A DNA stretch of 64,000 bases, taken from positions 310,001-374,000 of the forward strand of contig NIVC01000829.1 of assembly GCA_002269645.1 (NCBI GenBank). The letters run 5' to 3'. The notes beneath the pieces were generated by a model, which was not told where the DNA came from, ran no database searches, and saw only the letters and a list, made by a program, of their open reading frames with translations. The number at the start of each line of letters is the position of its first letter. Position 1 is the stretch's first letter. This DNA is from Macrostomum lignano (taxonomy: Eukaryota). Positions 11,905 to 64,000 of this stretch are shown piece after piece. The translations under genes and the position numbers were made by a program.

Positions 11905-12682
11905 TTTCATATGTATCAGTCAGCCTGACTGCTAGCCTGTCTTTAGATACCAGTCTGTCTTATTTAATTTTTATTTTATCTGCTGATCAAGAAACATACA
12001 ATCTGATTCAGGCACTGTACGCTTGTATTGTTCTTTCGCACTAATTAATATAAGAAACGTTCTACAGGCATTTAATAGTTTATGATCTGATCCAGAACTA
12101 AATCAAAATACTAACATCATAGACAAACGTACCCAGCTTTCTTTTAGGAGCAGCAGAAGATTGCTGCTGTTGCTGCGGTTTCGACTGTTGTTCCTCCAGC
12201 TCTGGAGCCGCCGCAAAGTGCCTCGATCCATCCCCGCTAGCTACAATTCGACCAAGAGATGCAACAGCTCCTGCACTACTACTGGCACTAGTTCTATCAG
12301 TAGTATTAACCACCATGGTAGGAACTTTTGACTTGTCAATAAGCTGCAAATCCTTCTGCTTTTTTGTAGCAGAAGATGAAGACAATAAAGCCGGCATTAG
12401 TTGAGCTTGCATCGGCTGCTGCTGTTGCTGCTCCCACTTGCTTGCTTGAACTTCATCTTGAGACTGCAAGCTGGCAGTCTGAGGCCAGGTGCTGGCCAAC
12501 TTTAATATACTAATAATGTCTCCCATTCGACGAATGCCCATATCTGTGAGGTGTTCTTTGCGCAGATCGCCCAGAACAGACTCTGTGATTCTGTTATCCT
12601 CAAATATGGCTGCATAGTTTTGTGCATCTGCTGATGGAATGCCAGCAGTGCTAAAGAATTTCCGCCAATATGATTGGCTCAT
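4321..12682 (-). CDS. C19orf47: C19orf47-like SAM-domain protein; exons 12682..12133, 11353..10891, 5243..4864, 4394..4321 (last exon less certain; alternative stop at 4847)
   Basis: N-terminus [27 protein letters not shown]...GDIISILK matches the C19orf47 N-terminal SAM-like domain. Later SVFNRLG and SYRGVLK motifs are typical of the family. All three GT-AG introns are phase-consistent (1, 2, 1). Confidence 0.85.
4525..4805. repeat. 19-bp purine-rich tandem repeat (GGAGAGGGTAGAGGGTAAA)
   Basis: Visible period; lies in the predicted last intron of the C19orf47-like gene. Confidence 0.9.
5380..6195 (+). mobile_element. 5'-truncated Penelope-like element: GIY-YIG endonuclease end plus 3' pseudo-LTR
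   Basis: [40 protein letters not shown] is the PLE GIY-YIG signature. It is flanked by (GTCT)n/(TATC)n microsatellites and is homologous to 10030-10830. Confidence 0.85.
6089..6132 (+). ncRNA. Minimal type I hammerhead ribozyme motif of the PLE pseudo-LTR
   Basis: TCGACC-CTGACGA-A-GGCC(agccaata)GGCA-GAAA-TATT-GGTCGA: perfect 6-bp stem I, conserved core, palindromic AATATT in place of stem III; the G10.1-C11.1 pair is mutated. Confidence 0.7.
6200..6545. repeat. (TATC)n microsatellite
   Basis: Directly visible. Confidence 0.97.
7947..10830 (+). mobile_element. Decayed near-full-length Penelope-like (Neptune-like) retroelement with diverged pseudo-LTRs at both ends
   Basis: RT motifs LVRMDVE (about 9280), QVKGTSMG and RYIDD (9415-9615), thumb FLD..KPT..LLY..S.H (9677-9958), and frameshifted GIY-YIG (10040-10340). 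Regions 7947-8175 and 10590-10830 are homologous direct repeats (GTTGCAACGTG..CGCCCAA..GGGTCGAAA..TTCTTAGAAT..GTGGTTT). Confidence 0.88.
8069..8108 (+). ncRNA. Minimal hammerhead ribozyme motif in the 5' pseudo-LTR
   Basis: CTGATGA-A-GACCC(tgttc)GGGTC-GAAA-ATTT-GG: core and 5-bp stem II intact, stem I weak. Confidence 0.7.
11520..11945. repeat. Degenerate (GTCT)n microsatellite in intron 1 of the C19orf47-like gene
   Basis: Directly visible. Confidence 0.95.
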
Positions 12683-21400: not shown

Positions 21401-21767
21401 GATCTACAAACTCGCATGCAGCGTTAGGTGTACAGTCATGGGACGATTTTATATTGCTCTATTGTAAATGCGCCCATTGTTTACTTTTTTAGTAACGTAC
21501 GTCACCACTAACACAGTGTGCGCTGGCTTGTGCGTCAGCTGAAACACTATATAAACAGCTGCAGTTATTGCGAATGATAAAAAGGAAGAGAAGACAGGAA
21601 AGAAAGACAGAAGAAAAGCTAAGCACAGAATTTCAGCTTTTGAATTACACATCTAGCCCGCTATAAAACGCAGGTCTTTCTGTCCACAGCCGAGGGCAAG
21701 TGGATAATCGTCAAGAGAGAATTTGCAATTGCAACTTTCGGCTAGCAGCATTCAAGACCCAACAAAA

Positions 21768-31339: not shown

Positions 31340-32040
31340 TCCAGCCAATCAGAAAGCAAGAGAAATCTAAGGAACCTCTCCCAGCCAATCAGAAAGCAAC
31401 AGAAATCTAATGAACCTTTTCCAGCCAATCAGAGAGCAACAGAAATCTAATGAACTTTTCCCAGCCAATGAAAAAGCATTAGAAATCTAATGAACTTCCC
31501 CCAGCCAATCTGAAAGCAACAGAAATCTAATGAACTTTTCCCAGCCAATCAGAGAGAAACAGAAACATAATGAAATTCTCCCAGCCAATCAGAGAGCAAC
31601 AGAAATCTAATGAACTCCTCTAGCCAATCAGAAAGAAACAGAAATCTAATGAACCTCTCCCAGCCAATCAGAAAGCAAGAGAAATCTAAGGAACCTCTCC
31701 CAGCCAATCAGAAAGCAACAGAAATCTAATGAACCTTTCCCAGCCAATCAGAGAGCAACAGAAATCTAATGAACCTTTCCCGGCCAATCAGAGAGCAACA
31801 GAAATATAATGAACCTTTCCCGGCCAATCAGAGAGCAACAGAAATATAATGAACCTCTCCCAGCCAATCAGAAAGCAACAGAAATCTTATGAACTTCTCC
31901 CAGCCAATCAGAAAGCAACAGAAATCTAATGAACCTCTCCCAGCCAATCAGAAAGCAACAGAAATCTAATGAACCTCTCCCAGCCAATCAGAAAGCAACA
32001 GAAATCTAATGAACCTCTCCCAGCCAATCAGAAAGCAACA
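31340..32040. repeat. 40-bp tandem repeat containing CAGCCAATCAG in nearly every unit, about 17 copies
   Basis: Unit CCCAGCCAATCAGAAAGCAACAGAAATCTAATGAACCTCT. Confidence 0.95.
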
Positions 32041-32454
32041 CTCATGCGTACTATAAGGCACCACAGAGAGGAGTTTAACACAGACAATAAAACTATAAAC
32101 ACAAACGCAATGATTAATATTAAAAAAAATAAGAGAACTGAATGGGTACAAAACAATAGTAATTAATTTCACGTCGCACCTCAATAATTTTTGTTTATAT
32201 CGACAGATTATAAATCGATATTTAGCTTTATAATTATAAATAAACATTTAATTCGTTAGACGTTATTGTATTAATTCATATTATACACTTAATATACATC
32301 ACGGGTCTGCCAACAGACCCAGGAGCCAGTTGAGAGCAAAACTTGAGAGAAGAGATCTGTAGAAGCGTAAATATTCAATATTATGGCGCTGATAGGCACT
32401 TATAAACATTTGATAGTAATGAAGAGCGCATCTTTACGATTGAAAATTCTATTG

Positions 32455-35010
32455 ATTATATCATTAGCTAGACTAGCAATCCATTTTATTGATTATATTC
32501 TTGGCTAGACTAGCAATCCATTTTATTGATTATATCCTTGGCTAGACTAGCAATCCATTCTATTGATTATATTCTTGGCTAGACTAGCAATCCATTCTAT
32601 TGATTATATCCTTGGCTAGACTAGCAATCCATTCTATTGATTATATCCTTGGCTAGACTAGCAATTCATTCTATTGATTATATCCTTGGCTAGACTAGCA
32701 ATCCATTCTATCGATTATATCCTTAAATAGACTAGCAATCCATTCTACTGATTATATCATTAGCTAGACTAGCAATCCATTTTATTGATTATATTCTTGG
32801 CTAGACTAGCAATCCATTTTACTGATTATATCCTTGGCTAGACTAGCAATCCATTCTATTGATTATATCCTTGGCTAGACTAGCAATCCATTTTACTGAT
32901 TATACTCGTATCCTTGGCTAGACTAGCAATCCATTCTACTGATTATATCATTAGCTAGACTAGCAATCCATTTTATTGATTATATTCTTGGCTAGACTAG
33001 CAATCCATTTTATTGATTATATCCTTGGCTAGACTAGCAATCCATTCTATTGATTATATTCTTGGCTAGACTAGCAATCCATTCTATTGATTATATCCTT
33101 GGCTAGACTAGCAATCCATTCTATTGATTATATCCTTGGCTAGACTAGCAATTCATTCTATTGATTATATCCTTGGCTAGACTAGCAATCCATTCTATCG
33201 ATTATATCCTTAAATAGACTAGCAATCCATTCTACTGATTATATCCTTGGCTAGACTAGCAATCCATTCTATTGATTATATTCTTGGCTAGACAAGCAAT
33301 CCATTCTACTGATTATATCCTTGGCTAGACTAGCAATTCATTCTATTGATTATATCCTTGGCTAGACTAGCAATCCATTCTATCGATTATATCCTTGGCT
33401 AGACTAGCAATCCATTTTACTGATTATATCCTTGGCTAGACTAGCAATCCATTCTATTGATTATATTCTTGGCTAGACAAGCAATCCATTCTACTGATTA
33501 TATCCTTGGCTAGACAAGCAATCCATTCTACTGATTATATCCTTGGCTAGACAAGCAATCCATTCTATTGATTATATTCTTGGCTAGACTAGCAATCCAT
33601 TCTATTGATTATATTCTTGGCTAGACTAGCAATCCATTCTATTGATTATATCCTTGGCTAGACTAGCAATCCATTTTACTGATTATATCCTTGGCTAGAC
33701 TAGCAATCCATTCTACTGATTATATCCTTGGCTAGACTAGCAATCCATTTTACTGATTATATCCTTGGCTAGACTAGCAATCCATTCTACTGATTATATC
33801 ATTAGCTAGACTAGCAATCCATTTTATTGATTATATTCTTGGCTAGACTAGCAATCCATTTTACTGATTATATCCTTGGCTAGACTAGCAATCCATTCTA
33901 TTGATTATATCCTTGGCTAGACTAGCAATCCATTTTACTGATTATACTCGTATCCTTGGCTAGACTAGCAATCCATTCTACTGATTATATCATTAGCTAG
34001 ACTAGCAATCCATTTTATTGATTATATTCTTGGCTAGACTAGCAATCCATTTTATTGATTATATCCTTGGCTAGACTAGCAATCCATTCTATTGATTATA
34101 TTCTTGGCTAGACTAGCAATCCATTCTATTGATTATATCCTTGGCTAGACTAGCAATCCATTCTATTGATTATATCCTTGGCTAGACTAGCAATTCATTC
34201 TATTGATTATATCCTTGGCTAGACTAGCAATCCATTCTATCGATTATATCCTTAAATAGACTAGCAATCCATTCTACTGATTATATCCTTGGCTAGACTA
34301 GCAATCCATTCTATTGATTATATTCTTGGCTAGACAAGCAATCCATTCTACTGATTATATCCTTGGCTAGACTAGCAATTCATTCTATTGATTATATCCT
34401 TGGCTAGACTAGCAATCCATTCTATCGATTATATCCTTGGCTAGACTAGCAATCCATTTTACTGATTATATCCTTGGCTAGACTAGCAATCCATTCTATT
34501 GATTATATTCTTGGCTAGACAAGCAATCCATTCTACTGATTATATCCTTGGCTAGACAAGCAATCCATTCTACTGATTATATCCTTGGCTAGACAAGCAA
34601 TCCATTCTATTGATTATATTCTTGGCTAGACTAGCAATCCATTCTATTGATTATATTCTTGGCTAGACTAGCAATCCATTCTATTGATTATATCCTTGGC
34701 TAGACTAGCAATCCATTTTACTGATTATATCCTTGGCTAGACTAGCAATCCATTCTACTGATTATATCCTTGGCTAGACTAGCAATCCATTTTACTGATT
34801 ATATCCTTGGCTAGACTAGCAATCCATTCTACTGATTATATCCTTGGCTAGACTAGCAATCCATTCTATTGATTATATCCTTGGCTAGACTAGCAATCCA
34901 TTTTACTGATTATATCCTTGGCTAGACTAGCAATCCATTTTACTGATTATATCCTTAAATAGACTAGCAATCCATTCTATTGATTATATCCTTGGCTAGA
35001 CTAGCAATCC
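32455..35010. repeat. 37-bp satellite (TTGGCTAGACTAGCAATCCATTCTATTGATTATATCC) with about 1.04-kb higher-order duplication
   Basis: Visible period; the rare variant TATACTCGTATCC recurs at 32901 and 33943. Confidence 0.95.
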
Positions 35011-35101
35011 AGCCTACATTTCTAAAGTACAAATCGGTAAAAAAAAGTGCCTTAGCGCACGCAGAGTTTTAAACATTAAGCAGCTGAAAGACCCAAGCAG
35101 C

Positions 35102-38100
35102 TCAAAGAATCTCGCAGGATATATAGTAGTTACAGCAGTAAAATCCGCGCTCTTCAATAGGCCTCGGCGGTATCAAATCAAGGTCATCGGCGTCCTGCTG
35201 ATCGTCCAGATTGTAGCCGTCTTTCAATAGTTGGTCGCGAATCTCGGCGTTAGTTAACCGGCGCATTGTGTGGGAGTCGTAGTAGGTGACGTCATCGTCT
35301 TCGTTGCTGAGGGCGATGGAAGAGGGATTTGAGATTGTGGCTGACATTGCTAAGGGGTGATTTTTAATGATTGTACGGGGTGATTCTTAGGGATGTTAGG
35401 GGCGAGTTTTTGGGAAGTTTAAGGGCGATTCTTAGGGAACTTAAGGCGCGATTCTTGGGATTTTAAGGACCGATTCTTAAGGAGTTTTAGGGGCGATTCT
35501 TAGGGATTTTAGGGGCGATTCTTAAGGAGTTTTAGGGGCGATTCATAGGGATTTTAGGGGCGATTCTTACGGAGTTTAGGGGCGATTTTTAGGGCGTTTA
35601 AGGGGCAGTTCTTAGGCATTTAAAGGGGCGATTTTTAGGGGTGTTTAAAGGGAGATTCCTAGGAAACTTAACGGCCGATTCTTAGAGAGTTTAAGGGGAG
35701 ATTCTTAGGGAGTTTAATGGGAGATTCTTAGGGAGTTTAAGGGGAGATTCTTAGGGAGTTTAAGGGGAGATTCTTAGGGAGTTTAAGGGGACATTCTTAG
35801 GGAGTTTAATGGGAGATTCTTAGGGAGTTTAAGGGGAGATTCTTAGGGAGTTTAAGGGGAGATTCTTAGGGAGTTTAAGGGGAGATTCTTAGGGAGTTTA
35901 ATGGGAGATTCTTAGGGAGTTTAATGGGAGATTCTTAGGGAGTTTAAGGGGAGATTCTTAGGGAGTTTAAGGGGAGATTCTTAGGGAGTTTAAGGGGAGA
36001 TTCTTAAGGAGTTTAATGGGAGATTCTTAGGGAGTTTAAGGGGAGATTCTTAGGGAGTTTAATGGGAGATTCTTAGGGAGTTTAATGGGAGATTCTTAGG
36101 GAGTTTAATGGGAGATTCTTAAGGAGTTTTAGGGGCGATTCATTGGGATTTTAGGGGCGATTCATTGGGATTTTAGGGGCGATTCTTACGGAGTTTCGGG
36201 GCGATTTTTAGGGCGTTTAAGTGGCGATTCTTAGGGATTTAAAGGGGCGATTTTTAGGGGTGTTTAAAGGCAGATTCCTAGGAAACTTAACGGCCGATTC
36301 TTAGAGAGTTTGAGGGGAGATTCTTAGGGAGTTTAAGGGGAGATTCTTAGGGAGTTTAATGGCAGATTCTTAGGGAGTTTAATGGGAGATTCTTAGGGAG
36401 TTTAAGGGGAGATTCTTAGGGAGTTTAAGGGGAGATTCTTAGGGAGTTTAAGGGGAGATTCTTAGGGAGTTTAAGGGGAGATTCTTAGGGAGTTTAAGGG
36501 GAGATTCTTAGGGAGTTTAAGGGGAGATTCTTAGGGAGTTTAAGGGGAGATTCTTAGGGAGTTTAATGGGAGATTCTTAGGGAGTTTAAGGGGAGATTCT
36601 TAGGGAGTTTAAGGGGAGATTCTTAGGGAGTTTAATGGGAGATTCTTAGGGAGTTTAATGGGAGATTCTTAGGGAGTTTAATGGGAGATTCTTAGGGAGT
36701 TTAATGGGAGATTCTTAGGGAGTTTAATGGGAGATTCTTATGGAGTTTAAGAGGAGGTTGTTAAAGAGGTTCAGGGGAGATTCCTACAAGAGTTTAAGGG
36801 GCGAAACCCGAAAAAAAGCCGACAGAAAATTTATCATTTATAAAAAACAACAGCTCACTTTTCGTCAGACCCGATGTCAACCAGCGGCTGGCCCTGTTCG
36901 CTCAGATAGTGACCCGAACTATTTCGCATCGGCACTTTGAGCTTGTCTCTGGACAGCAGATTGTATCGCCGAATGCGGGGCCGCTGGTCTAAAAAAACAT
37001 GGGCAAAGTAAAGTTATCAATGTACTTTTGTAGAATATTTTACATTAGAAAGGACAACCGTAACCGCAAACAACTGGCAACGCTAACCTGCTTTCTGCCG
37101 TCTCGATCGGCTCGGTTGACTTCGTCGGAACAGGCGAAAAAAGCCGGAATCGCTGCCTCTGGACACGGCCACCTGGATGGCACGAATAGTTGTTTGGCGT
37201 TAAAGAACTACGATATACTACTCACGCGTAAAAGTAGTCTGTCAAGCAAAAAACAGAAATCAAAACTGTGGCGATTTTGTAGATTTTAAATAACTACTTT
37301 ATGGTTTATAAGGGGTGATTATTGAGCGATATCTTGGGATATTAATGTGCTATGCTTGAGGATTTTAAAGGGCGATTCTTTAAGATTTTATAAAGACCGA
37401 TTTTTTGGAGGCTTTTAGGAGTGATTCTTAGGAATTTGAACAAGGGGCGATTTTTTAGGTTTTCGAATGCTTTTCTTGGGATTCGAATGCTATGCTCAGG
37501 GACTTTAAAAGGCGATTCTTAGAGTTTCGAGGGTCCTATTTTTGGGATTTTAATGAACGATTCTTAGAGATTTCAATGCAGGCAAGGAACATAGCCGCTT
37601 TTCCTGGCAAATTTAATGGGCGATTTTTAGGGATTTTAGGGGGCGATTCTTAGGGCTATTAAAGAGCGATTCTTAGGGATTTGAAGGGCGATTCTTGGGC
37701 ATTTTAAGGGGCAATTCTTGTGGATTTCAAGGAGCGATTCTTAAAGATTTGAAGGGCGATTCTTGGGGATTTTAAGGGGCGATTATTATGGATTTTAAGG
37801 GGCGATTATTGTGGATTTTAAGGGGCGATTCTTGGGGATTTGAAGGGGCTATTGTTATAAATTTTAAGGGGCAATTATTGTGGATTTTAAGGGGCGATTA
37901 TTGTGGATTTTAAGGGGCGATTCTTGGTGATTTTAAGGGGCGATTCATGGGGATTTTAAGGAGCTATTCTTGGTGATTTTAAGTGGCGTTTCATGGGGAT
38001 TTTAAGGGGCTATTCTTGGTGATTTTAAGCGGCGATTCTTGGTGATTTTAAGGGGCGATTCTTGGTGATTTTAAGAGGCGATTCTTGGGGATTTTAAGGG

Positions 38101-39692
38101 GCTATTCTTGGTGATTTTAAGGGGCGATTTATGGGGATTTTAAGGGGCTATTCTTGGTGATTTTAAGGGGCGATTCTTGGTGATTTTAAGGGGCGATTCT
38201 TAAAGATTTGAAGGGCGATTCTTGGGGATTTTAAGGGGCGATTATTATGGATTTTAAGGGGCGATTATTGTGGATTTTAAGGGGCGATTCTTGGGGATTT
38301 GAAGGGGCTATTGTTATAAATTTTAAGGGGCAATTATTGTGGATTTTAAGGGGCGATTATTGTGGATTTTAAGGGGCGATTCTTGGTGATTTTAAGGGGC
38401 GATTCATGGGGATTTTAAGGAGCTATTCTTGGTGATTTTAAGTGGCGTTTCATGGGGATTTTAAGGGGCTATTCTTGGTGATTTTAAGGGGCGATTCTTG
38501 GTGATTTTAAGGGGCGATTCTTGGTGATTTTAAGAGGCGATTCTTGGGGATTTTAAGGGGCTATTCTTGGTGATTTTAAGGGGCGATTTATGGGGATTTT
38601 AAGGGGCTATTCTTGGTGATTTTAAGGGGCGATTCTTGGTGATTTTAAGGGGCGATTCTTGGGGATTTTAAGGGGCTATTCTTGGTGATTTTAAGGGGCG
38701 ATTCATGGGGATTTTAAGAGGCGATTATTGTGGATTTTAAGGGGCTATTCTTGGTGATTTTAAGGGGCGATTCTTAGGGATTTTAAGGAGCGATTATTGT
38801 GAATTTTAAGGGGCTATTCTTGATGATTTTAGTAGCAATTCTAGTGGATTTTAAAGGTCGATTCTTGTGGATTTGAAGGGGCAATTATTGTGGATTTTAA
38901 GAGGGGATTTTTGTGAATTTTAAGGAGCGATTCTTGTGAATTTTAAAGAGCGATTCTTCAGGAATTAAAGGGGCGATTCTTGTGGATTTTAAGGGGTGAT
39001 TCTTGGGAATTTTAAGGGGCGATTCTTTAGGACTTGAAGGGGCGATTTTTAGAGGTTTCTAATGGTAATTTTTGGGAACTTTAATGGGAGACTATAGATA
39101 GTCAAATGATGACAAAAAATAGCTGGAAAAAAACTCTAGAAAGGATATTTATGTTACTTAAAGTAGCATCAAAACCAACGAGCTTGCAACAAAAATTAAT
39201 AAAATTGCAGAAGCAACGTAACGAAACCTTAACCATCAGTCCATCACCAATAATTTTTTTAATTTAATACCTATTTCCATTTTCTTTTATCTAAACACAG
39301 CAAGACTTACACGTGATGAAGTTGCATCGCCAGCAGCAATGCTTGTACTATTACTACACACAGTACTGTGATTATTATTACTAATCTGTTTTTGTTGGAA
39401 TTTCTGAAATACAAAAGCAACAGCTGGTTCAATTTTAAATGCAAAAAAGTATGAAATTTCAGGCAAAATCTCTCAGAATTCAGGTGATATTAAGCTATAA
39501 AGTACATATTAAGTAAATATTTAGATAGATTATTTAACTTCTGAGAAAACTCACCTTTGGCAAATCTAAATCGTGAATTCCACTGTTATCTTCCTCATCA
39601 TCATGCAATGCTGAATTGCCATTACCAGTGCGATGCTCTGTTGGATCTGCAGCTGACAGCATGGCACTGCCGCTGCCATCTCCACTTGCCAT
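35102..39692 (-). CDS. FAM219: FAM219-like protein, about 216 aa; exons 39692..39555, 39403..39311, 37172..37088, 36988..36859, 35306..35102
   Basis: C-terminus QLLKDGYNLDD...DDLDLIPPR...CC matches FAM219A QLLKDGYRLDEIPDDEDLDLIPPK..CMCC. PLVDIGSDE and NLLSRDKLKVP also align. All introns are GT-AG and phase-consistent (0, 0, 1, 2). The N-terminal exons are less certain. Confidence 0.8.
35380..36775. repeat. 23-bp G-rich satellite (GGGGAGATTCTTAGGGAGTTTAA) in the last FAM219 intron
   Basis: Visible period; the unit contains TTAGGG. Confidence 0.93.
37330..39090. repeat. Related 23-bp satellite (GGGGCGATTCTTGGGGATTTTAA) in FAM219 intron 2, with about 460-bp internal duplication
   Basis: Visible period; the block starting TTAAAGATTTGAAGGGCG occurs at 37741 and 38200. 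Confidence 0.92.
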
Positions 39693-45416: not shown

Positions 45417-47100
45417 GCGACAGACTGGCCGGTCGGATAGGACAGGTAATGGATCAGGCGGACCCGCCCGTTGGACTTGGGAAGGGCACCGATGGGGTTG
45501 ATTTTGATCGGGCCGCTCCATTGGATGTACCTCCCAAGGCGCAGCTCCTCCTCGACCTGGGCTTCCACAGCAGAGCGGTGCAGCAGGGCGGAGGCGTGGT
45601 TCTTGGACGAAGTCAAAGGTGGCTGGCCAGCATTGGTGAGAGCGAAACCGTTGACGACGCCTTGCATCAGAAAGTCGCGGTCTGAGTCGTCGCTGAGCAG
45701 AGCACCCCAGGCGTCAGGTTGCAGGTCAGACGAGATGGGCAGCGAAGAAGTAAAAGCAGAAAAATCGGAATTAAAAGCAGAGCAGTCAGCTGGATAAAAT
45801 GGCATCAGTTTTTTGCACTCGCACCGGTCACGTGACCCGGCAGCTGTCCGGTGAGTAATGACTGCGGCGACTGCGTGTGAGCGTGAGCCGGGTGCGCTGC
45901 CAGGCAGCCTTGGATTTTGCAGACGTAGCGGAACTTGCAGTTCTGGCGGTTGCATCCGGACTCGCAGTTGAAGCGCAGACAGATCGGCCTGGTTGCTGCC
46001 GGGATTTGCTGCTGGCTGGGCTGCTTAGCGAACGTGAACCGCAGGTTTCTGGGGGCGTTGAGGTGCTTGTGGTACAACTGAGGGGGCTCCTCACCCCACG
46101 CCATGCCCGACTCCGCAACCAGCCTCCGGTAGTCCTCGTCAAACTCCCAGATTACGGACTCCGGGTAGTCAGCAGCCAGCAGCTCTCCAATCTTGCGATT
46201 GTAGTCAAGGTAGCCAAGGACGTCAGTCAGGAGACCATCAGTGCTTCCAGCAGCCGCCGGGAGTTTTTCCTTGATCAGCTTTTGCAAGATGATCGAGTTG
46301 GCCGCGATCCACTGACCAGCAGAGATACTAGACAGCTTCGGCTCCTGCTTTCTGAATGTGAGCGAGCCATTCTCCATAGTGGCGATCAACTGCTCCTGAC
46401 TGGCTGAGCCGGGTCCTCTGGCTAGCTTGATGTGGTCTCTGACTGGATGCAACTTGCGAGTCGGAGCCTGGCAATTAGCGGCCTGAAGCTGAGCCGCCTC
46501 CCTCATCCCAGATTCAAAAACCTCGGGCAACTGCAGACTGGCATGTGCGTTATGCTCACCTGATGATGATGCTGGCTGGGGCTGAGCCGTCAAGCGCTGC
46601 TGAGTGTGAAGCTGTTGCTGAAGATCCCGACGACGGCCTTCCAGGACTTGCAGTTCGAGCAGCTCCACCTCCTGCCGCAGCGCAGCCAGCCGGTCGCTCC
46701 CCGCCCCCGGAGGCGCCTCGCCCGCGCTGCCGATGCCGTCTTCGGCGTCCGGAGCAGAAGTCATCTCGGAGTTGTTGAAGTCTTCGTCAGGTTGCTCTAA
46801 ACCGAGTGCAGTAGACAAGCGCTTGGCAAGCTGTTGTTTGCGGCCCGTAGTAGGCAGGCCTCTGTTTCGCAGCTCAGCCTTGAGTTGGCGCACGTTTAGT
46901 CGCTTTGGGCTGGCACTCATGGCGGTGGCTGAGCAAAAAAATTGAGAAATGGCGGCGGAGCCAAGCCGGGCCGGGTGCAGAGGCTTTAAGCTGGCCGGCG
47001 CGGCCAACACCCCCACACCTCAACCCCCCGCCAAAGTACAGCGATATGTACAGCGGCACCCTCCGGCGCGTCTAACACCCCTTACTCAGAGAGTAACGAT
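45417..47100 (-). mobile_element. DIRS/Ngaro-type (tyrosine recombinase retrotransposon) fragment: intact gag-like ORF1 and truncated RT
   Basis: ORF2 has DRDFLMQGVVNGF...NHASA...EEELRLGR...NPIGALPKSNGRVRLIHYLSYP, the typical Ngaro RT N-terminus, and is cut at about 45417. ORF1 has DEDYRR...W plus ICLRFN..GC..NCKFRYVC..C...H zinc motifs. Confidence 0.82.
45805..46920 (-). CDS. Gag-like ORF1 (371 aa) with N-terminal SAP domain and C-terminal Cys/His fingers
   Basis: LNVRQLKAELRNRGLPTTGRKQQLAKRL is a SAP consensus; the ORF is uninterrupted; its stop overlaps the ORF2 ATG (TGATG, 45807-45803). Confidence 0.8.
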   Translation of the reverse strand: MSASPKRLNVRQLKAELRNRGLPTTGRKQQLAKRLSTALGLEQPDEDFNNSEMTSAPDAEDGIGSAGEAPPGAGSDRLAALRQEVELLELQVLEGRRRDLQQQLHTQQRLTAQPQPASSSGEHNAHASLQLPEVFESGMREAAQLQAANCQAPTRKLHPVRDHIKLARGPGSASQEQLIATMENGSLTFRKQEPKLSSISAGQWIAANSIILQKLIKEKLPAAAGSTDGLLTDVLGYLDYNRKIGELLAADYPESVIWEFDEDYRRLVAESGMAWGEEPPQLYHKHLNAPRNLRFTFAKQPSQQQIPAATRPICLRFNCESGCNRQNCKFRYVCKIQGCLAAHPAHAHTQSPQSLLTGQLPGHVTGASAKN

Positions 47101-48069: not shown

Positions 48070-50733
48070 TCACAATAATGGATAGCGGTGTGCCAAAAAA
48101 CTGAGAAAAGCCAAAAATGAGAGCGTAGACCGTTTGGACAAACCAGCGACTTTTCGAGCAGACATCTTCTTCCCCTTGCGAGTATTACCGGAACACATGC
48201 CCATATAATAGGGCACCTTGAACTCTTTGGGATACAGCGCCCTCATTTTGTCCACATCCAGTTTGGTCATGGACTGTCGGTTAGCTACGATTTTAGACCC
48301 GTCAGATTTCTTGATCATGGTGTAGGCTCCGTTGCAGGAGAAGTGACAGGAGCCGTAGTGCATGATCGATGCGCTGTCGTAGGTGAGCTTTAGACTCGGG
48401 TCCGGCCCATCCATTGTGATGTAGTAGTTTGAGCACTCCGATGCTGCAATGTTTTGGGGAAGCAGAGTGACATATTTATCTCGGTCTGGCCGGCACTGCT
48501 CGTGATACCGACCCAGAGCGTGTAGAATCTCGTGCTGGATTGTGCCGAACGGACAGGAGTCCTCGTGAAGCCACACGCGGGTAAACGTTGGCTGCATGCC
48601 AACCTCAGCCCGGCACTGTGATAAAAAATTAATGAGTATAAGCTAGTATTGTTAAAACTGAATTAAGATGCTATTTATTTGAATTTTGCTAATAAATTTA
48701 TCATTGATTTTAGGTTTCTTCCACTGAAACGTAGATCTGCGGCTGAGCTGTCGGTTGCACATCTGGTCCAATTGGGCATTATGTGTTACATGTACATCGA
48801 ATTCGTCAACAAACTATTCGTCAACAGACCTAAAGTTTAAGAAATTCGTGGAAATCGAATTCCTCAACAGTTAAAACAAGCTGAGCGAATTCGTCATTCG
48901 GCGATCCATACTATGTACATAATACCACGTTGTACATAGTTGAGTATATCCAGATACAATTACAAGTATATCAAGAGTCCATCGGGTATAACGGTTTGTG
49001 TGCTGCGTATGCTTTATTACACTTTATTGCATCTCTCGAGTGAAGTACGTCACTATAATTCAAATTTAATCCCAAGTTTTGTTTATTTCAACCATTAACA
49101 AGGTTTTGAACTTCAGATTTCAAAATGCGTGCAAAAATAGTTCCGGGAATTTAATATTGGAAATCAGTGGGTTTAAAATCTGCGGGAATTAGCAGCTTGT
49201 AAAAAATTAATATCAAATAAAAACCCTGATCCTCCTTCGTTATCTTACATGTGTCTTCTCAATAGGCTTTTTGTCTTTAAATTTTTAGCGTGTAGCAAAT
49301 ATACTAATAAATAGCGTACGTATTTTCAGGTAAACTGAAATTCGTCAACAGTGCATTGTAAGGTAAACCGAATTCGTCAACAGACGTCAAGTTGACGAAT
49401 TAGATTTTGACGAATTCGGTGGCACCCTCAATCATTATTATTGTCATGTATACTCTGCGTACGTACGCTCGTATATAAGCGTACGTATCCTATGTTCCGT
49501 GTATGCTCAGGGTCAACAGAATGGCATGACGGCGTCCCCCCTGCGAACGTGTCCTTGCATTTATGACTGTGGATTGCTTTGTCGATTTGAAACTTAGCAG
49601 CAACTACAACCCCACTGGAGACTATGGAATGAGCTAATCCTGTTCAAATTCCATATATGCTTAATTAACATCAGCCAACTTCGTGCCGACTCACCAGTTT
49701 GTTCACATCATTAATGATGTGCATGTAGCCTTTGCGGCAGATTTCACCGCTTGAGGTTTGCGCCGCCTTGAACTCCAAATGCTCCTCGCCAACATTTTCC
49801 TGGATAATTTTCATTGCCTCGAGAATCTTCTTTGAGTAATCGAAGCTGAATGAGGGATCAATCAAGTAGAATATGATGCCGCCAGGCCAGAACTTCATGT
49901 TCAAGTTGTAGTTCGGGTCCAAGGTGTCAGAACTCGCCCGATCGGCCTGTCCCCTGGACGATGGCGGTGGACTCCTGGGAAACACCATGTCGTCAATCAC
50001 CAGATATTCGGTTCCGTACGGGGTTTTTTCGATTTGGCCCATTGAATTTCTGAGGAAATAAATATGGATTGTCTATCAATACATTGTACAGTGACATTCA
50101 TGAATGTTATATATTTAGCAAAAAACATATTCATTCAAATACTTTTCTCTTTACCTCAGGAGGGTGTCCTTGATTGGCGGATATCCACCAGTCTGGAATG
50201 TATTGTTCAGATAGGATCGCGGAATTAAAAAAGTTATAAGTTAAACCTTAAATATTCGAGTTAAATATTAATTTAGCTTTAATTAACAAGATACATATAT
50301 AGTCATTTTAATTTTGTTTAACAGTATATGCTTTTGGTAATCTTACTCGCAAACAAGCTAACATTTATAACTAGATTTTTTAAAAGTAAAAATTACATAT
50401 CTTATTAAACTAACAGTTATCCGTGACGTTAGAAATGCCTGCATACTTACAGGCTAATGCCTGCAAGGGGACGGACATGGCCCTTCTGCGAAGATCCAAT
50501 TGATTGTGGCACATAGCTAAATAACTATAATTATATATTCATTGCTAAGAACTCAAACTTACTGAACTTTTTATGGCAGCCGTGCAACTGCAGCTCTTAT
50601 TTTGAAAGTATGGGCACTGGAGATTCTTATTGTTGCTGTTTTTATTGCTTTTGCTAGCGGCCTGATTTACAGGCAACGCCTGCAGACCAACACAACAAGT
50701 TGCAGCAACGATTAGCAGAGTTGGCCACTGCAT
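48070..50733 (-). CDS. Astacin-family zinc metalloprotease A; exons 50733..50563, (50485..50451 or 50192..50155), 50049..49695, 48615..about 48070 (3' end uncertain)
   Basis: Signal peptide MQWPTLLIVAATCCVGLQA, WPGGIIFY, HEILHALGRYHEQCRPDRD (HExxHxxGxxH) and Met-turn SIMHY; phase-consistent GT-AG sites. Confidence 0.88.
48790..49425. mobile_element. Degenerate MITE-like insertion in an astacin A intron
   Basis: Repeated GAATTCGTCAAC motifs, with reverse-oriented copies (GACGAATT) at the right end; left terminus degenerate. Confidence 0.45.
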
Positions 50734-50996
50734 TGCAGAATTTTTTGCAGCCTTTGAAGACGCCGGCAGCTTCATGGCAGATTCGGCTGCTCATTTTCGA
50801 AAAAAATAGACAAAAACAACCCTTTTTTAGGAGCTTCGGTCTGCATTGTGTGCATCTCAAACGAAAATGCGATATCATTCTCCATAGCTGTGCAGAAGTA
50901 GCAGAATCAGATTGAGTCTATGGTCAAATTTTAAAGCACTTTGGACTTTAGGAACTTTGTACTTTCCTATTGTCTGGCGTAACTTTGCAGTAGCTG

Positions 50997-51393
50997 GGTG
51001 CTGGCGCCCCTTGGTGCTGGCGCCCCTTGGTGCTGGCGCCCCTTGGTGCTGGCGCCCCTTGGTGCTGGCGCCCCTTGGTGCTGGCGCCCCTTGGTGCTGG
51101 CGCCCCTTGGTGCTGGCGCACCTTGGTGCTGGCGCCCCTTGGTGCTGGCGCCCCTTGGTGCTGGCGCCCCTTGGTGCTGGCGCCCCTTGGTGCTGGCGCC
51201 CTTGGTGCTGGCGCACCTTGGTGCTGGCGCCCCTTGGTGCTGGCGCACCTTGGTGCTGGCGCCCCTTGGTGCTGGCGCCCCTTGGTGCTGGCGCCCCTTG
51301 GTGCTGGCGCCCCTTGGTGCTGGCGCCCCTTGGTGCTGGCGCCCCTTGGTGCTGGCGCCCCTTGGTGCTGGCGCCCCTTGGTGCTGGCGCCCC
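50997..51393. repeat. 16-bp GC-rich tandem repeat (GGTGCTGGCGCCCCTT); mirror copy at 62919-63316
   Basis: Directly visible. Confidence 0.95.
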
Positions 51394-52559
51394 TAGTTTT
51401 TTGTAGCTTTTTATCTCCACAATTTAATGTTTATATACTTCATAACTGCAATACATTTTCGCATCAAACAAACCTGATACGACGCCTAGAGCAAGGTGAA
51501 ATATTTCGTTGGTTTGGTTAGGTTTCCTATACAAAATTTGCAGACTATTATTGGGACACAAGAAAATTAGGAAAAAATGCGTACAAATGATGGTTAAATT
51601 AATAATTGTATATTAAAAAACACTCAGTTTCTTCACAGTTTTGTAAGGATGCATGAAAAATAAAATTATTCAACTTTTTCGAGTATATTTTACTGCTTCG
51701 GTAGAAATGAGTTGCAGATGTGTGCAATAATTCAGACAAAAGCAGAAGACCACATCCATGTCAGACAAATTGAAATTATTATCAGAATGCGGCAACTTTG
51801 GCCGAAAGTTTTTTTACCTCGTTTTTCAACGACGCCATCTTCGGCGCACATGCTCTCACTGTACGGCACCTTGAACTCTTTGGGATACAGCGCCCTCATT
51901 TTGTCCACATCCAGCTTGGTCATGGACTGTCGGTTGGGTTCGATTTTAGACCCGTCAGATTTCTTGATCATGGTGTAGGCACCGTTGCAGGAGAAGTGAC
52001 AGGAGCCGTAGTGCATGATCGATGCGCTGTCGTAGGTAAGCTTTAGACTCGGGTCCGGCCCATCCATTGTGATGTAGTAGTTTGCGCACTCATATGCTGC
52101 CATATTTTGTGGAAGCAGAGTGACATATTTATCTCGGTCTGGTCGGCACTGCTCGTGATACCGACCCAGAGCGTGCAGAATCTCGTGCTGGATTGTGCCG
52201 AACGGACAGGCGTCCGGGTGGAGCCACACATAGGTGTGCTTCACGCTCATGCCGACCTGTGCGCGGCACTGCCAAGGATGAGGCAGAAGGATTTGAGTAA
52301 AACTGAGCCGATGGTTCTATGGGCTAAAGTGATTTGCGATTCATTCCTGACCCCGTGAAACAAACAATTTTTTTATGGTTGCTGAATAGAGAATGGGGTT
52401 TCCCACTGAGTGTAACATTGTCTAGCCTCAGTAGGGCCGTATGAATAAAGTGATATTGCGTGGCTTTGCGAGATTTCTACGATCAATATGAATTATATTA
52501 TGAACAATATGAGCTGCCATAGACTAAAAGTCTGAGAATTTGCTCAGAAAATACGAACG

Positions 52560-53075
<516 letters not shown>

Positions 53076-53564
53076 TGTAGATAGATCTTTTAATGCACAC
53101 TTAAGTATTTACCACTGCACACTGCCACTGCACACTGCCACTGCACACTACCACTGCCACTAACTAACCTGTCTCTTGGAAGCTCTCTTCACAAACAGGT
53201 ACCCTTTGCGACAGATTGTACCGCTGGAAGTTTTCGCCTCTTAAACTCCAAATGATTCTTGCCGACATTCTCCTCGATTTTCTGCATTGCATTTAAAATT
53301 TCGTTCGAATAGTCCAAACTGAAGGCCGGGTCGATGTTGTAGAATATGATGCCGCCGGGCCAGAACTTCAAATCCAACTTGTAGTTCGGGTTGTTGGGAT
53401 CGGCAATCACCTGGTCAGCTTGTGACGATGACTGGGAGATGGGACTTCTGGGGAACATCATGTCGTCAATCACCAGGTACTCGGTTCCATCATCGTCAGT
53501 TTCTATGTGTCCCGGCATGTCGCTTTGAAAATTCGGATTTAAATTGACGTCAACAGCTGCAGAT

Positions 53565-54282
53565 TCGGGATCAAGGATCGGGATCAAGGATCGGGATCAA
53601 GGATCGGATCAAGGATCGAGATCAAGGATCGGGATCAAGGATCGGGATCAAGGATCGGGATCAAGGATCGGGATCAAGGATCGGGATCAAGGATCGGGAT
53701 CAAGGATCGGGATCAAGGATCGGGATCAAGGATCGGATAAAGGATCGGGATCAAGGATCGGGATCAAGGATCGGGATCAAGGATCGGGATCAAGGATCGG
53801 GATCAAGGATCGGGATCAAGGATCGGGATCAAGGATCGGGATCAAGGATCGGGATCAAGGATCGGGATCAAGGATCGGGATCAAGGATCGGGATCAAGGA
53901 TCGGGATCAAGGATCGGGATCAAGGATCGGGATCAAGGATCGGGATCAAGGATCGGGATCAAGGATCGGGATCAAGGATCGGGATCAAGGATCGGGATCA
54001 AGGATCGGATCAAGGATCGGGATCAAGGATCGGGATCAAGGATCGGGATCAAGGATCGGGATCAAGGATCGGGATCAAGGATCGGGATCAAGGATCGGGA
54101 TCAAGGATCGGGATCAAGGATCGGATCAAGGATCGGGATCAAGGATCGGGATCAAGGATCGGGATCAAGGATCGGGATCAAGGATCGGGATCAAGGATCG
54201 GGATCAAGGATCGGGATCAAGGATCGGGATCAAGGATCGGGATCAAGGATCGGGATCAAGGATCGGGATCAAGGATCGGGAT
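53565..54282. repeat. 13-bp tandem repeat (GGGATCAAGGATC); mirror array at 58950-60708 is more than twice as long
   Basis: Visible period; the long GSGSRIGIKDRDQ ORFs are its translation. Confidence 0.97.
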
Positions 54283-55097
54283 AATTGTCACCTACCTTTG
54301 AATGACTCCGTTTGAGAAGGTATCATCATTCTAAAATAAAGTTAAGCAGTAAGAATTTAATCGTTTTGAGCCACTTATGTTGACGGCACACTTGTGCAGG
54401 CATTCCAATGAGTAGATAATTATCGGATCCCACTTACATTAGGCCTACTGAAGCCGGAACAGCCGCAGGCCAACTTAGATCGATAATGGGGACATTGTAC
54501 TTTCGGGGTAGCCTTCTTAACTCTGTTAACGGATATGGCGATTCCAGCACAGCCTCCGATGCTATCTGAGACCAAACTCAGCACCAGGCAGCATTCAAGA
54601 AAACGGAGTATAGACTCAAATAGCTTTGCTCTTTGTTGTCTCATGGCTGACATCAGCCATAAGATTGTTAAATCTAATCGAATCTAATTTATTTTTCTAT
54701 TAGTCTTGCTTAGATAATCAGTTGAAAAATGGGGACATTATTTTTTGTCTATGGTGAATGATCAGAAAGGAAGTGTTGCTTTAAAAGGATGGGAGGCGTT
54801 GGTGATAAGCGTTTGCTTAAATGTGCAATACATACGAAATAGAAGGCCTTTCTTGACTTGACGTTTCTTCGGTAGAAAGTCTGGAAACCTCGTGACAATT
54901 TTTTTAGAAGTACAGAACTTTGTACTTACTTTTTGAAATTTCTCAATATCTAACATCGATTTGTTCCCTCTTTTCTTATTTCTTCTGGAGCTGAATTCAA
55001 CGATCAAAACAGCTCATTTATTTAAATATATTAATATTCTCAGAGGCCTTCGGCGACATCCTCCCACACCAAGGTATTGCTTCTTACCTTGAAAGTG

Positions 55098-55174
55098 NNN
55101 NNNNNNNNNNNNNNNNNNNNNNNNNNNNNNNNNNNNNNNNNNNNNNNNNNNNNNNNNNNNNNNNNNNNNNNNNN
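55098..55174. other. Assembly gap (77 N)
   Basis: Run of N. Confidence 1.
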
Positions 55175-55400
55175 GAACGTTTTAAACTATCAACAACTTC
55201 AACTTGACGCTATATTAAATAGTCGGATCCTATGTTAAATCTTAGCCTATTCTTTCGGTATCTATATATCTAGGCAAAAAATAGGAAGATCCTCTCAAAC
55301 TTTTGCATGTGTTTTTGAGATTGCAGTTGTATTTTAATCAAACTGTAGTTATAAAGTTTATGCTGGTTGCAAAGACGGCAAGAGGTCAATCGGTGCTTTA

Positions 55401-55706
55401 TCAACTTTTAGGTACACCAATCGGCCCTCTTCTGCAGGAGCCCTGACACCGCAGCGACCGGTCTGGATAGCGTCCGCAGCACTTTGAGCAGCAGTCGCTG
55501 TCGCTCTCGCATCGTTGCATTCTTGAAGCGCAGTTGCTGGGACAGGCCAGGCATTCAAGACCTGTTGTGGCGGACGTGCACGAAAAAACAAATCACAAAC
55601 ATTTACAAATACTGAATTACATTGCAGGTGTCTGTAGCATGAAAGCAGACAGCTTACCAACAGACACGAGAATGACTAGCACCAACAGCAGTACTAAATG
55701 CTTCAT
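55401..55706 (-). CDS. Secreted 69-aa cysteine-rich knottin-like peptide; exons 55706..55658 and 55561..55401
   Basis: MKHLVLLLVLVILVSV-G|LECLACPSNCASRMQRCESDSDCCSKCCGRYPDRSLRCQGSCRRGPIGVPKS*. Hydrophobic signal exon, G|gtaagc donor, pyrimidine-rich ...acaacag acceptor, phase 1, ATTAAA about 65 nt after the stop. Confidence 0.8.
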
Positions 55707-56193: not shown

Positions 56194-57250
56194 TTAGTTC
56201 GTTAGTCTACAACTTTTTATTGCTATCACTATTGCATCTTGTTTGTCGGGGAACTGAAATTGATCGTGCATGGTTGGCCCGTAGAAGTTTAGTACAGGGG
56301 CGGACCATTGTTGACTTAGAGCCAAAGCCTGCGGTCCGGAAATATTGGAGTTGCCGTTGGCAATTGCTGTTTCAACCTCACTCACGCCGCTCGTTTTGGC
56401 TGCGGCAGTGGGCTCTCCATATAGTACTGCCGACATGTTCTTCTCTGACTTACGGACGTCGATGTAGGACCTGTCAGCCTTTTCGGTAATCCTTCCAGTC
56501 TTCTGGCTTGCTATTTCCTTACTGATGCCGCCTTCCACCAACCTAGTCTTGCAGGTCCGACGCAGACTACTGTTCGTGATAGGTCCGGTCGTACTGCCGG
56601 CTTCAATCTGCTTGCCAGAGAACAGATTCTTCACGACGTTTTCAATCGTATGCACACCCATTGGTTGACTACGATACCATATATCAGATGTCGGCGCCTT
56701 GATCGGTGTCAGATAGAACGCAGAGTGACCTTGAGTCCGAATTGCTCCGGCCGGTGACGAACGTAGGTCTTATACATCGTGATGACACATTTGTCTGGGT
56801 CGCCATTCGAATAGATCCTGGTTGTTTTCGGCTCAACGTGTGCCTTGTGCAAACCAACTCTCCCGTTCTTCGACATTCGCTCGGTGTACACCAGACATTC
56901 AGTGTCATTTTCCTTGACGAGCACAAGCTGCGATCGCTCACCGAATTCTAACGCGCGATGTTCAGCACTCGCTCTGAGCGATAGGTGCAAACCTAAGTGG
57001 TCCTTAGGACCACTCTCCGTTGTCCTTGCGAAGTTCAAGCAGAAAGCACTGCAGCACGTAGTCCCATTCCTTCTTGCTCCACTCGAACATATCCTTCACA
57101 ACTTTCAACTGAGCAGTTTGGCGCACTCGCCAGTCAGTATACCAAGCGCACAGTTTATTCAATTGCTACGAACCTTTGTGGCCGTTGTTTTTGGAATTCG
57201 CGAGTCTCTAAATTCGGCAAGCCGGACGTCAAACGTTGGTGCTAGTGCTT
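56194..57250 (-). pseudogene. Decayed Crypton-type (DUF3504/ZMYM-like) tyrosine recombinase
   Basis: Fragments WYTDWRVR..WDYVLQCFLLELRKDNGE, GLHLSLRASAEHR..LVYTERMSKN..VEPK..DKCVITMYKTY, AFYLTP..WYRSQPMGVHTI and TNSSLRRTCKTRL..GI..TGR..RSY, with frameshifts and an internal deletion. Confidence 0.8.
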
Positions 57251-58578
57251 TGCACTGTAGACGCTTCAGTGCAAAGCACTGAACACTGAGCACTGAGCAC
57301 TGAACAAAGCAATGAAGACGCTGAATCACAGGTATACTTTTTGTCAACCAATCATAAGAAGTAAAGTCATAAAATGTTATTTTTAGCCACCAACCTTTCA
57401 TGCGTGACCTACAAATTATCATTTCAAACCACATCAGCGATTCATCATTCGGTCTGCACCGAATGAACCAATCAAAAATAACCCAGCTACGTTAACCAAT
57501 CATGCGCACTTACAGTAGACTTGTTGCTTAACTTTCTACCATGTCATGCTTGACAGCAACCAAAGCGTGACCCTTTGACATTTAAGAAAATGTACCCAAC
57601 GACCTCACGTGGGGTCCGTTTCTCTATAAAAACAAGTTGTCCGAAGAGGACCGGAGCGTCAAAAATCTGTCAGAGAGAAGAAGCTTCGAAGAGGAAGCCA
57701 GACTTTCTTCAGACCAAGTCAAAAAGGACTCGGCTGAGTTATTTGCGGTAATCCTTACTTATTTGCGCTAGTTGTTGAATCGACTCAAATTGATATTGTG
57801 ACTGAGTCTGTTTGAGACTCCATTGGTTGTAGTCTCCAGAAGGACTACCCTGATAGCGGCCCTAGAAGACTATCAGTGATTACCGGAGCTATACCTAGAG
57901 TGGATTAAGAAGGAATCCACTAGAAGGAGAAGGCTTATTTGAAACCGCAGCGCAGCGCAGGGATCCCCGTTGTTAATTCGAAGTTTCTCATTGGTCCGGA
58001 CTACAGATACCGGACAGGGACGACACCTGGGCAGTAAAAGAGAAACTAGCATCGAGCTACCAGCATCAAAGCGTCTAGACGAACTGACATCGAGGAATTC
58101 CAGATCGACAAAAGGAGTACTCATCCGAAGACACCACTTTCAAGGTAAGAAGCAATACCTTGGTGTGGGAGGATGTCGCCGAAGGCCTCTGAGAATATTA
58201 ATATATTTAAATAAATGAGCTGTTTTGATCGTTGAATTCAGCTCCAGAAGAAATAAGAAAAGAGGGAACAAATCGATGTTAGATATTGAGAAATTTCAAA
58301 AAGTAAGTACAAAGTTCTGTACTTCTAAAAAAATTGTCACGAGGTTTCCAGACTTTCTACCGAAGAAACGTCAAGTCAAGAAAGGCCTTCTATTTCGTAT
58401 GTATTGCACATTTAAGCAAACGCTTATCACCAACGCCTCCCATCCTTTTAAAGCAACACTTCCTTTCTGATCATTCACCATAGACAAAAAATAATGTCCC
58501 CATTTTTCAACTGATTATCTAAGCAAGACTAATAGAAAAATAAATTAGATTCGATTAGATTTAACAATCTTATGGCTG

Positions 58579-62580
<4,002 letters not shown>

Positions 62581-63580
62581 ATTATTGCACACATCTGCAA
62601 CTCATTTCTACCGAAGCAGTAAAATATACTCGAAAAAGTTGAATAATTTTATTTTTCATGCATCCTTACAAAACTGTGAAGAAACTGAGTGTTTTTTAAT
62701 ATACAATTATTAATTTAACCATCATTTGTACGCATTTTTTCCTAATTTTCTTGTGTCCCAATAATAGTCTGCAAATTTTGTATAGGAAACCTAACCAAAC
62801 CAACGAAATATTTCACCTTGCTCTAGGCGTCGTATCAGGTTTGTTTGATGCGAAAATGTATTGCAGTTATGAAGTATATAAACATTAAATTGTGGAGATA
62901 AAAAGCTACAAAAAACTAGGGGCGCCAGCACCAAGGGGCGCCAGCACCAAGGGGCGCCAGCACCAAGGGGCGCCAGCACCAAGGGGCGCCAGCACCAAGG
63001 GGCGCCAGCACCAAGGGGCGCCAGCACCAAGGGGCGCCAGCACCAAGGGGCGCCAGCACCAAGGTGCGCCAGCACCAAGGGGCGCCAGCACCAAGGTGCG
63101 CCAGCACCAAGGTGCGCCAGCACCAAGGGGCGCCAGCACCAAGGGGCGCCAGCACCAAGGGGCGCCAGCACCAAGGGGCGCCAGCACCAAGGGGCGCCAG
63201 CACCAAGGTGCGCCAGCACCAAGGGGCGCCAGCACCAAGGGGCGCCAGCACCAAGGGGCGCCAGCACCAAGGGGCGCCAGCACCAAGGGGCGCCAGCACC
63301 AAGGGGCGCCAGCACCCAGCTACTGCAAAGTTACGCCAGACAATAGGAAAGTACAAAGTTCCTAAAGTCCAAAGTGCTTTAAAATTTGACCATAGACTCA
63401 ATCTGATTCTGCTACTTCTGCACAGCTATGGAGAATGATATCGCATTTTCGTTTGAGATGCACACAATGCAGACCGAAGCTCCTAAAAAAGGGGTTGTTT
63501 TTGTCTATTTTTTTCGAAAATGAGCAGCCGAATCTGCCATGAAGCTGCCGGCGTCTTCAAAGGCTGCAAAAAATTCTGCA

Positions 63581-63863
63581 ATGCAGTGGCCAACTCTGCT
63601 AATCGTTGCTGCAACTTGTTGTGTTGGTCTGCAGGCGTTGCCTGTAAATCAGGCCGCTAGCAAAAGCAATAAAAACAGCAACAATAAGAATCTCCAGTGC
63701 CCATACTTTCAAAATAAGAGCTGCAGTTGCACGGCTGCCATAAAAAGTTCAGTAAGTTTGAGTTCTTAGCAATGAATATATAATTATAGTTATTTAGCTA
63801 TGTGCCACAATCAATTGGATCTTCGCAGAAGGGCCATGTCCGTCCCCTTGCAGGCATTAGCCT
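63581..63863 (+). CDS. 5' part of astacin D (inverted copy of A); exon 63581..63751 and 35-nt exon 63829..63863
   Basis: Reverse complement of 50733..50451; the gene runs off the window. Confidence 0.8.
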
Positions 63864-64000
63864 GTAAGTATGCAGGCATTTCTAACGTCACGGATAACTG
63901 TTAGTTTAATAAGATATGTAATTTTTACTTTTAAAAAATCTAGTTATAAATGTTAGCTTGTTTGCGAGTAAGATTACCAAAAGCATATACTGTTAAACAA

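Follow-up and report, generated by a model that had tools for sequence, protein, structure and literature searches.

The scorpion calcins (imperatoxin A / imperacalcin and maurocalcin; Pfam PF08099, Toxin_27) are peptides of about 33 residues with six cysteines and a strongly basic patch, and among sequences of solved structure they are the closest matches of the peptide described here. In cone snails, the framework XI peptides of the I-superfamily (GXIA, iota-RXIA) are built on the cysteine pattern C-C-CC-CC-C-C, and GXIA has been solved as an inhibitor cystine knot (ICK; pairs I-IV, II-VI and III-VII) with an additional V-VIII bridge, that is, as ICK+1 (PMC7912261). Among non-venomous invertebrates, the Mytilus CRP-I genes are lineage-restricted, multi-copy and clustered, and they encode small secreted C-C-CC-C-C peptides with a predicted knottin fold and a suspected role in defence (PMC10138031). 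Flatworms themselves have the UPF0506 proteins, known from Schistocephalus and Schistosoma, which are flatworm-restricted, secreted, cysteine-rich and of knottin fold (PMC8400842). For free-living Platyhelminthes, the searchable literature holds almost nothing on knottins.

[quoted passage not shown] We consider it probable, if well short of certain, that this is a transcribed and annotated M. lignano gene, lying in a near-identical array among astacin genes, and that its product is a secreted defence or effector peptide with five disulfides and probably a knotted fold. Direct reading of the minus strand and translation of the spliced sequence confirmed the two-exon layout, with the ATG at 55706, and the gene comprises the following features:

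55706-55658, minus strand: exon 1 from the start of the coding sequence, 49 nt, coding for MKHLVLLLVLVILVSV and the first base of the Gly17 codon
55657-55562, minus strand: phase-1 intron of 96 nt (GTAAGC...TTGTTTTTTCG...ACAG, GT-AG) with two in-frame stop codons
55561-55401, minus strand: exon 2, 161 nt including the TGA stop codon (55403-55401), coding for the rest of Gly17 and the predicted 52-aa mature peptide
55434-55553, minus strand: ten-cysteine domain, Cys20 to Cys59, with calcin-like ICK spacing and a part that fits framework XI
55333-55338, minus strand: ATTAAA, by its motif a likely polyadenylation signal, 62 nt 3' of the stop codon

Exon 1 closes with a G directly before the donor GTAAGC (55658/55657), and the acceptor ACAG is followed by the G that opens exon 2 (55562/55561). 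The spliced coding sequence of 210 nt yields a 69-aa precursor, MKHLVLLLVLVILVSVGLECLACPSNCASRMQRCESDSDCCSKCCGRYPDRSLRCQGSCRRGPIGVPKS, with cysteines at residues 20, 23, 27, 34, 40, 41, 44, 45, 55 and 59, spaced C-x2-C-x3-C-x6-C-x5-CC-x2-CC-x9-C-x3-C. The signal-peptide exon, the phase-1 intron and the ten-cysteine second exon with precisely this spacing agree in every detail with what the first-pass annotation had read from the DNA. Since the length of the intron is a multiple of three, both exons lie in one frame, and because the intron carries its two in-frame stops, the signal peptide is joined to the cysteine domain only in the spliced form. The only in-frame ATG of exon 2 is that of Met32, within the cysteine domain, and together with the intron stops this means that a sensible protein arises from the spliced form only. 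It had also been claimed that the intron keeps the gene out of the list of open reading frames, and the intron is indeed the only reason for its absence there. Translated in all six frames, the 64 kb contain no second case of ten cysteines within 41 residues, translations of a TGTC satellite excepted, and the GC content of exon 2 is 57.8% as against 33-41% in the intron and flanks. The two-exon pattern is beyond chance, and the gene is real.

By manual reading, the precursor opens with an n-region (MKH) and an 11-residue hydrophobic core (LVLLLVLVILV), followed by S-V-G and then L, so that the n-region, the h-region and the small residues at -3 and -1 that mark a secretion signal are all present in our judgement of the sequence. 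The end of this putative signal peptide coincides with the exon boundary. The remaining 52-mer would have a pI of ~8.6 and a net charge of ~+4, with cysteine making up 19% of its residues.

The public annotation already has a correct model of this gene, as an uncharacterised hypothetical protein. Every residue of its 69-aa product agrees with GenBank PAA76330.1 (BOX15_Mlig005852g7; M. lignano contig NIVC01000829.1, of which the window covers roughly positions 310001-374000), and the gene model in the public assembly covers the same 306-nt span. The first-pass annotation had presented the gene as hidden and undescribed; with PAA76330.1 on record and the same 306-nt gene called publicly it is not hidden, and as an annotated gene it is not undescribed, although we found no publication on it. 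The annotation of the assembly was not ab initio but drew on RNA-seq data assembled with StringTie/TACO and on a de novo transcriptome that had been mapped, and TransDecoder called the open reading frames (PMC5730564); the public gene model thus lends indirect support to a spliced transcript. The name 'Mlig005852' was not found in searchable full texts, nor in the portions covered of the supplements of PMC12732829, PMC5816591, PMC12896417, PMC5946080 and PMC7336406. Neither is it among the in-situ-validated transcripts of prostate, antrum, gonads and pharyngeal glands in the complete table of PMC7336406 (supplement file 16). A sibling protein record (GenBank PAA46449/58358/58359/61993) has His18; in all eight genomic copies shown for it the codon is CTT (Leu18), and His18 cannot be obtained from the sibling-record genes by splicing out any single intron. 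This record may derive from transcript and not from genome sequence.

Homology searches point to a gene that is, on present data, a lineage orphan, its family being restricted to the M. lignano lineage. In a word-indexed protein search the 99% identical sibling was the only match, and when the full precursor was run with phmmer against 1.84 billion representative proteins, the sibling and three further matches (E 2e-5 to 7e-4) were all that came back at E<=1e-3. We rejected as homologues an archaeal Dickkopf-like protein, the uncharacterised LOC143297701 of the whelk Babylonia areolata and a hypothetical protein of Diplonema (which shares 'RYPDR'), each of them a multi-repeat protein with a score summed over six to seven weak stretches. 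No credible homologue outside M. lignano was thereby found among the 1.84 billion representatives. In Pfam nothing was significant, the two entries listed, DUF1858 (E 0.15) and Toxin_27 (E 0.75), both being far under their cut-offs. Like the UPF0506 proteins, the product is a presumably secreted, cysteine-rich and flatworm-restricted protein, but it has no UPF0506 match in Pfam at E<=10. It resembles the Mytilus CRP-I peptides in being lineage-restricted, multi-copy, small and, as predicted, secreted, with no sequence relationship; the CRP-I genes have four exons and six-cysteine arrays and are hypervariable, whereas the M. lignano copies are near-identical.

A sequence search of the PDB (177,635 sequences) gave, at E<=10, three matches only, namely imperatoxin A, maurocalcin and a knottin trypsin inhibitor. 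Imperatoxin A was the best of them, with E 0.025 for the peptide and 0.019 for the core alone; maurocalcin had E 0.35-0.45, and the trypsin inhibitor, which shares RC(x)2DSDC, E 0.11. As the best of 177,635 sequences, the imperatoxin A match (E ~0.02) is borderline. When the cysteines were held fixed and the remaining residues shuffled 5000 times, the shuffled sequences aligned to imperatoxin A with a score of 40.5 +/- 7.6 and none of the 5000 reached the 76 of the peptide itself, which argues for a resemblance beyond the cysteine skeleton alone. Peptide and calcins have the loops C-x6-C-x5-CC-x3-C in common, followed by x9 in the peptide and x10 in the calcins, and both are basic in net charge, with an acidic D-x-D ahead of the CC. 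Against the calcin profile PF08099, however, the peptide scores 10.4 bits, far under the 25-bit gathering cut-off; with 52 residues and ten cysteines it is a longer molecule with more cysteines and a net charge of ~+4, and the basic patch KKCKRR of the calcins is missing. The resemblance may be convergent.

With the framework XI peptides the match lies in the arrangement of cysteines, Cys27 to Cys59 reading C-C-CC-CC-C-C with C-x6-C-x5-CC at the start. The later loops differ (x2, x9 and x3 in the peptide versus x3, x3 and x6 in GXIA), and the peptide has an N-terminal C-x2-C pair beyond the framework. The phmmer search with the full precursor against the 1.84 billion representatives (E<=1e-3) gave no homology to conotoxin precursors, and we read the likeness as a shared pattern and not as demonstrated homology. 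The CC-x2-CC core had been regarded as atypical; this cannot stand, given that C-C-CC-CC-C-C is conotoxin framework XI with its solved ICK+1 structure.

We took as ICK spacing six cysteines in the order C-x(3-7)-C-x(3-6)-CC (or C..C)-x-C-x-C, allowing the pairs I-IV, II-V and III-VI. Cysteines 27, 34, 40, 41, 45 and 55 have this spacing (C-x6-C-x5-CC-x3-C-x9-C), and the same six align with all six cysteines of imperatoxin A. AlphaFold without an alignment gave a low-confidence model of the 52-aa peptide (pLDDT 56) and, for a 38-aa core, a model with pLDDT 72 that has three short helices rather than a beta-sheet knot; Foldseek found no match in the PDB. No curated knottin-family profile in Pfam matched above threshold. 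The cystine-knot claim of the first-pass annotation thus stands as far as loop lengths and the exclusively calcin and knottin matches in the PDB go, and not as far as membership in a knottin family. By analogy with the described peptides, we consider that the product probably has five disulfides and a knottin-type fold.

The following sequence of events would be consistent with these features. The signal peptide encoded by exon 1 would send the product co-translationally into the endoplasmic reticulum, where it would probably be cut after Gly17 to leave the 52-aa mature peptide, and oxidative folding would then produce a compact mini-protein with five disulfides. An ICK core would be formed by Cys27-Cys41, Cys34-Cys45 and Cys40-Cys55, with two extra bridges, Cys44-Cys59, as in the ICK+1 peptides of framework XI, and Cys20-Cys23, which would close a local loop; for Cys27-41, 34-45, 40-55 and 44-59 this connectivity is suggested by the framework XI pairing of GXIA. 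A secretory cell of a gland or of the gut would release the peptide as a stable, protease-resistant extracellular ligand, and it would most likely serve as a defence or effector peptide whose target is a membrane or a channel. We obtained no support for a role in prey capture, as put forward earlier, or in venom, and nothing that we found bears on these roles or on the seminal one that had also been proposed. M. lignano is cultured on diatoms.

Besides the copy in the window, eight additional copies were present on three other contigs, making nine copies on four contigs in total; those listed by contig are three on NIVC01001982.1 (spaced 6.3 and 12.8 kb), two on NIVC01002383.1 and one on NIVC01004855.1. 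The copies are 99.7-100% identical across the 306 nt, intron included, and in the comparison of all nine the single variable site within the gene is an intron position, 55617 (A/C). All nine keep an intact reading frame. With the copies differing by one intron base only, dN/dS or any other test of purifying selection is impossible. The first-pass annotation had proposed a search for paralogues; near-identical ones are what these eight copies represent, and no diverged ones were found, since tblastn with the mature peptide returned only the gene itself in the window and the other copy-bearing loci held identical copies only. The flanks of the copies are also 97-100% identical across kilobases, so that one duplicated sequence context is common to all. 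As the DV1 line carries additional large chromosomes, the assembly has 180 Mb in blocks that are at least 95% identical (PMC5730564), and this duplicated-block structure together with the near-identity of the copies leads us to regard some of them as tandem duplicates of recent date and others as homeologous or allelic forms of a single locus.

Of the eight outside copies, seven have annotated astacin (PF01400) genes at a distance of up to 10 kb and one has none nearby, and the window copy is flanked by astacin genes on both sides, which brings the total to eight of nine copies across all four contigs. Around the window copy, the features are as follows:

48070-50775, minus strand: astacin (M12A) metalloprotease gene, public model of 383 aa, PF01400 at E 1.1e-26
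51732-52250, minus strand: astacin gene fragment, public model of 172 aa
55852-56021, minus strand: insertion/deletion polymorphism of 170 nt, located in what may be the promoter, 146-315 nt 5' of the ATG
60757-62580, plus strand: astacin gene, public model of 295 aa, in the mirror-image arm and divergent from the peptide gene
63539-64000, plus strand: in-window part of an astacin gene that begins at 63539

The constant sequence context and the astacin neighbours argue for segmental or tandem duplication and not for transposition, and we accordingly rejected a transposon origin. A clear match to a transposon had been named by the first-pass annotation as grounds for abandoning its reading; the copies, sharing their context and their neighbours as they do, are not transposon-like. 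For an exon of a neighbouring astacin gene our search returned no relatives at E<=1e-10, an unexpected result for an annotated gene that we ascribe to a limitation of the search.

The 170-nt insertion/deletion has a 20-nt inverted repeat (CCACTGAAACGAGGAGATAC / GTATCTCCTCGTTTCAGTGG) and resembles a small foldback or MITE-like element. Most copies have it, among them the window copy, and two lack it. Just upstream of the peptide gene, at 56194-57038 on the minus strand, there are two adjacent open reading frames that were duplicated together with the gene. They appear to be the decayed remains of a DUF3504 / tyrosine-recombinase-like (Crypton-type) element, the DUF3504 fragment at 56709-57038 matching in Pfam at E 1.4e-5, under the cut-off. 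The peptide gene also sits in the ~3-kb centre of a large inverted duplication (50314-55097 versus 58135-64000), the non-satellite parts of which are 100% complementary. Its left arm ends exactly at a scaffold gap of 77 N (55098-55174), and one arm carries 55.5 units of a 13-nt satellite as against 135.5 in the other. On none of the other contigs does the inverted copy follow directly after the gene. Either the inverted duplication arose in scaffolding, as an artefact, or it is a palindrome of very recent origin.

Several other readings of the gene have to be weighed against these data. The hallmark of the IGFBP N-terminal domain is a GCGCCxxC motif, with 12 cysteines in ~80 residues. In UniRef, both protein variants carry the automatic name 'IGFBP N-terminal domain-containing protein', and the opening C-x2-C and the later CC-x2-C recall the outline of the IGFBP N-subdomain, as would befit a disulfide-ladder domain serving as a small secreted binder of insulin-like or growth-factor peptides. 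Yet the peptide has ten cysteines over 40 residues and reads SDCCSKCCG where GCGCCxxC is missing, the domain itself (PS51323 / PF00219) being twice as long and richer in cysteines; PF00219 is unlisted in Pfam even at E<=10, and no IGFBP chain appears among the PDB sequence matches at E<=10. The UniRef label is the only sign of a match to the PROSITE profile PS51323, and we consider this explanation quite unlikely. The close association with astacin genes on all four contigs would also suit a knottin-type protease inhibitor or regulator whose partners or targets are these neighbouring secreted proteases, the genes for both having been amplified together as a single functional locus, the more so as a knottin trypsin-inhibitor chain is one of the three weak PDB matches and protease inhibition is common among knottins (PMC10138031). 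Linkage of this kind may, however, reflect only the duplication of a segmental block, and the trypsin-inhibitor match does not go beyond its E of 0.11; we give this interpretation a low probability. We know of no knottin inhibitor of astacins.

An orphan gene for a small secreted protein in multiple copies also has the profile of the fast-evolving reproduction genes of Macrostomum (PMC7336406, PMC5977470), a category to which many fast-evolving, lineage-restricted secreted M. lignano genes belong, and the product could in principle come from a reproduction-related gland, as a constituent of prostate or seminal fluid or of the antrum, cement gland or eggshell. The absence of Mlig005852 from the in-situ-validated list of PMC7336406 is a weak argument in the other direction, the positional expression tables being covered in part, and the chance that this account is right appears small to us. 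We hold it very improbable that the reading frame is spurious or non-functional, be it a frame that arose by chance where repeat-rich DNA is transcribed or an array of young pseudogenes. Such a view could draw on the lack of homologues outside the species, on a region that is rich in satellites and has an assembly gap and a fragment resembling a DUF3504 transposon, and on copies too similar to reveal constraint. It would, however, need a large coincidence, with a textbook signal peptide that ends exactly at a canonical GT-AG phase-1 intron and, behind it, a non-repetitive ten-cysteine stretch with ICK loops, coding-like GC content and a putative poly(A) signal; the frame is also kept intact in nine of nine copies. 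A more far-reaching version of the knotted-peptide reading, in which the gene is the founder of a flatworm-specific 'ICK+2' knottin family, toxin-like or defence-like in a free-living and non-venomous worm, recently co-amplified with astacins as a compact 'secretory cocktail' locus and with a calcin-like core that arose independently of scorpions and cone snails, strikes us as rather unlikely. We retain as the probable explanation a transcribed gene for a secreted, likely knotted defence or effector peptide.

The wider window contains further genes and a very high content of satellites and minisatellites. An uninterrupted open reading frame of 1423 aa at 21723-25994 on the plus strand has CARD, NB-ARC, APAF-1 helical and WD40 repeat domains, by which we identify it as an Apaf-1-like apoptosome gene, and it appears intronless across this span. 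On the minus strand there are open reading frames for a choline-transporter-like protein (26871-28784; PF04515, E 2e-95), a SAP-domain protein (45805-47016) and a SAM-domain protein (12098-12682). Satellite-rich stretches occupy 174-1093, 2381-3715, 31341-39047, 50997-54282 and 58949-63316. They include a 37-mer repeated 69 times at 32446-35011 and 23-mers repeated 63 times at 35351-36801 and 37612-39047, the latter array with a strong GC skew, and further arrays in the window are of 46-mer, 13-mer, 16-mer and 4-mer units.

The earlier interpretation overstates both the novelty of the gene, which is annotated and has a known cysteine framework, and its function; what the locus encodes is an uncharacterised, presumably secreted, cysteine-rich and ICK-like peptide. 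RNAi and in situ hybridisation work in M. lignano. Transgenesis is established as well (PMC5730564), and in combination these methods make this orphan secreted peptide unusually testable in vivo. Its gene is tightly linked to astacin genes, which suggests a hypothesis that can be tested in this way, namely that the peptide and the astacins are co-expressed in one secretory cell type. If the peptide is a true knottin with two extra disulfides, a free-living flatworm would join the animals with independently evolved ICK effectors.
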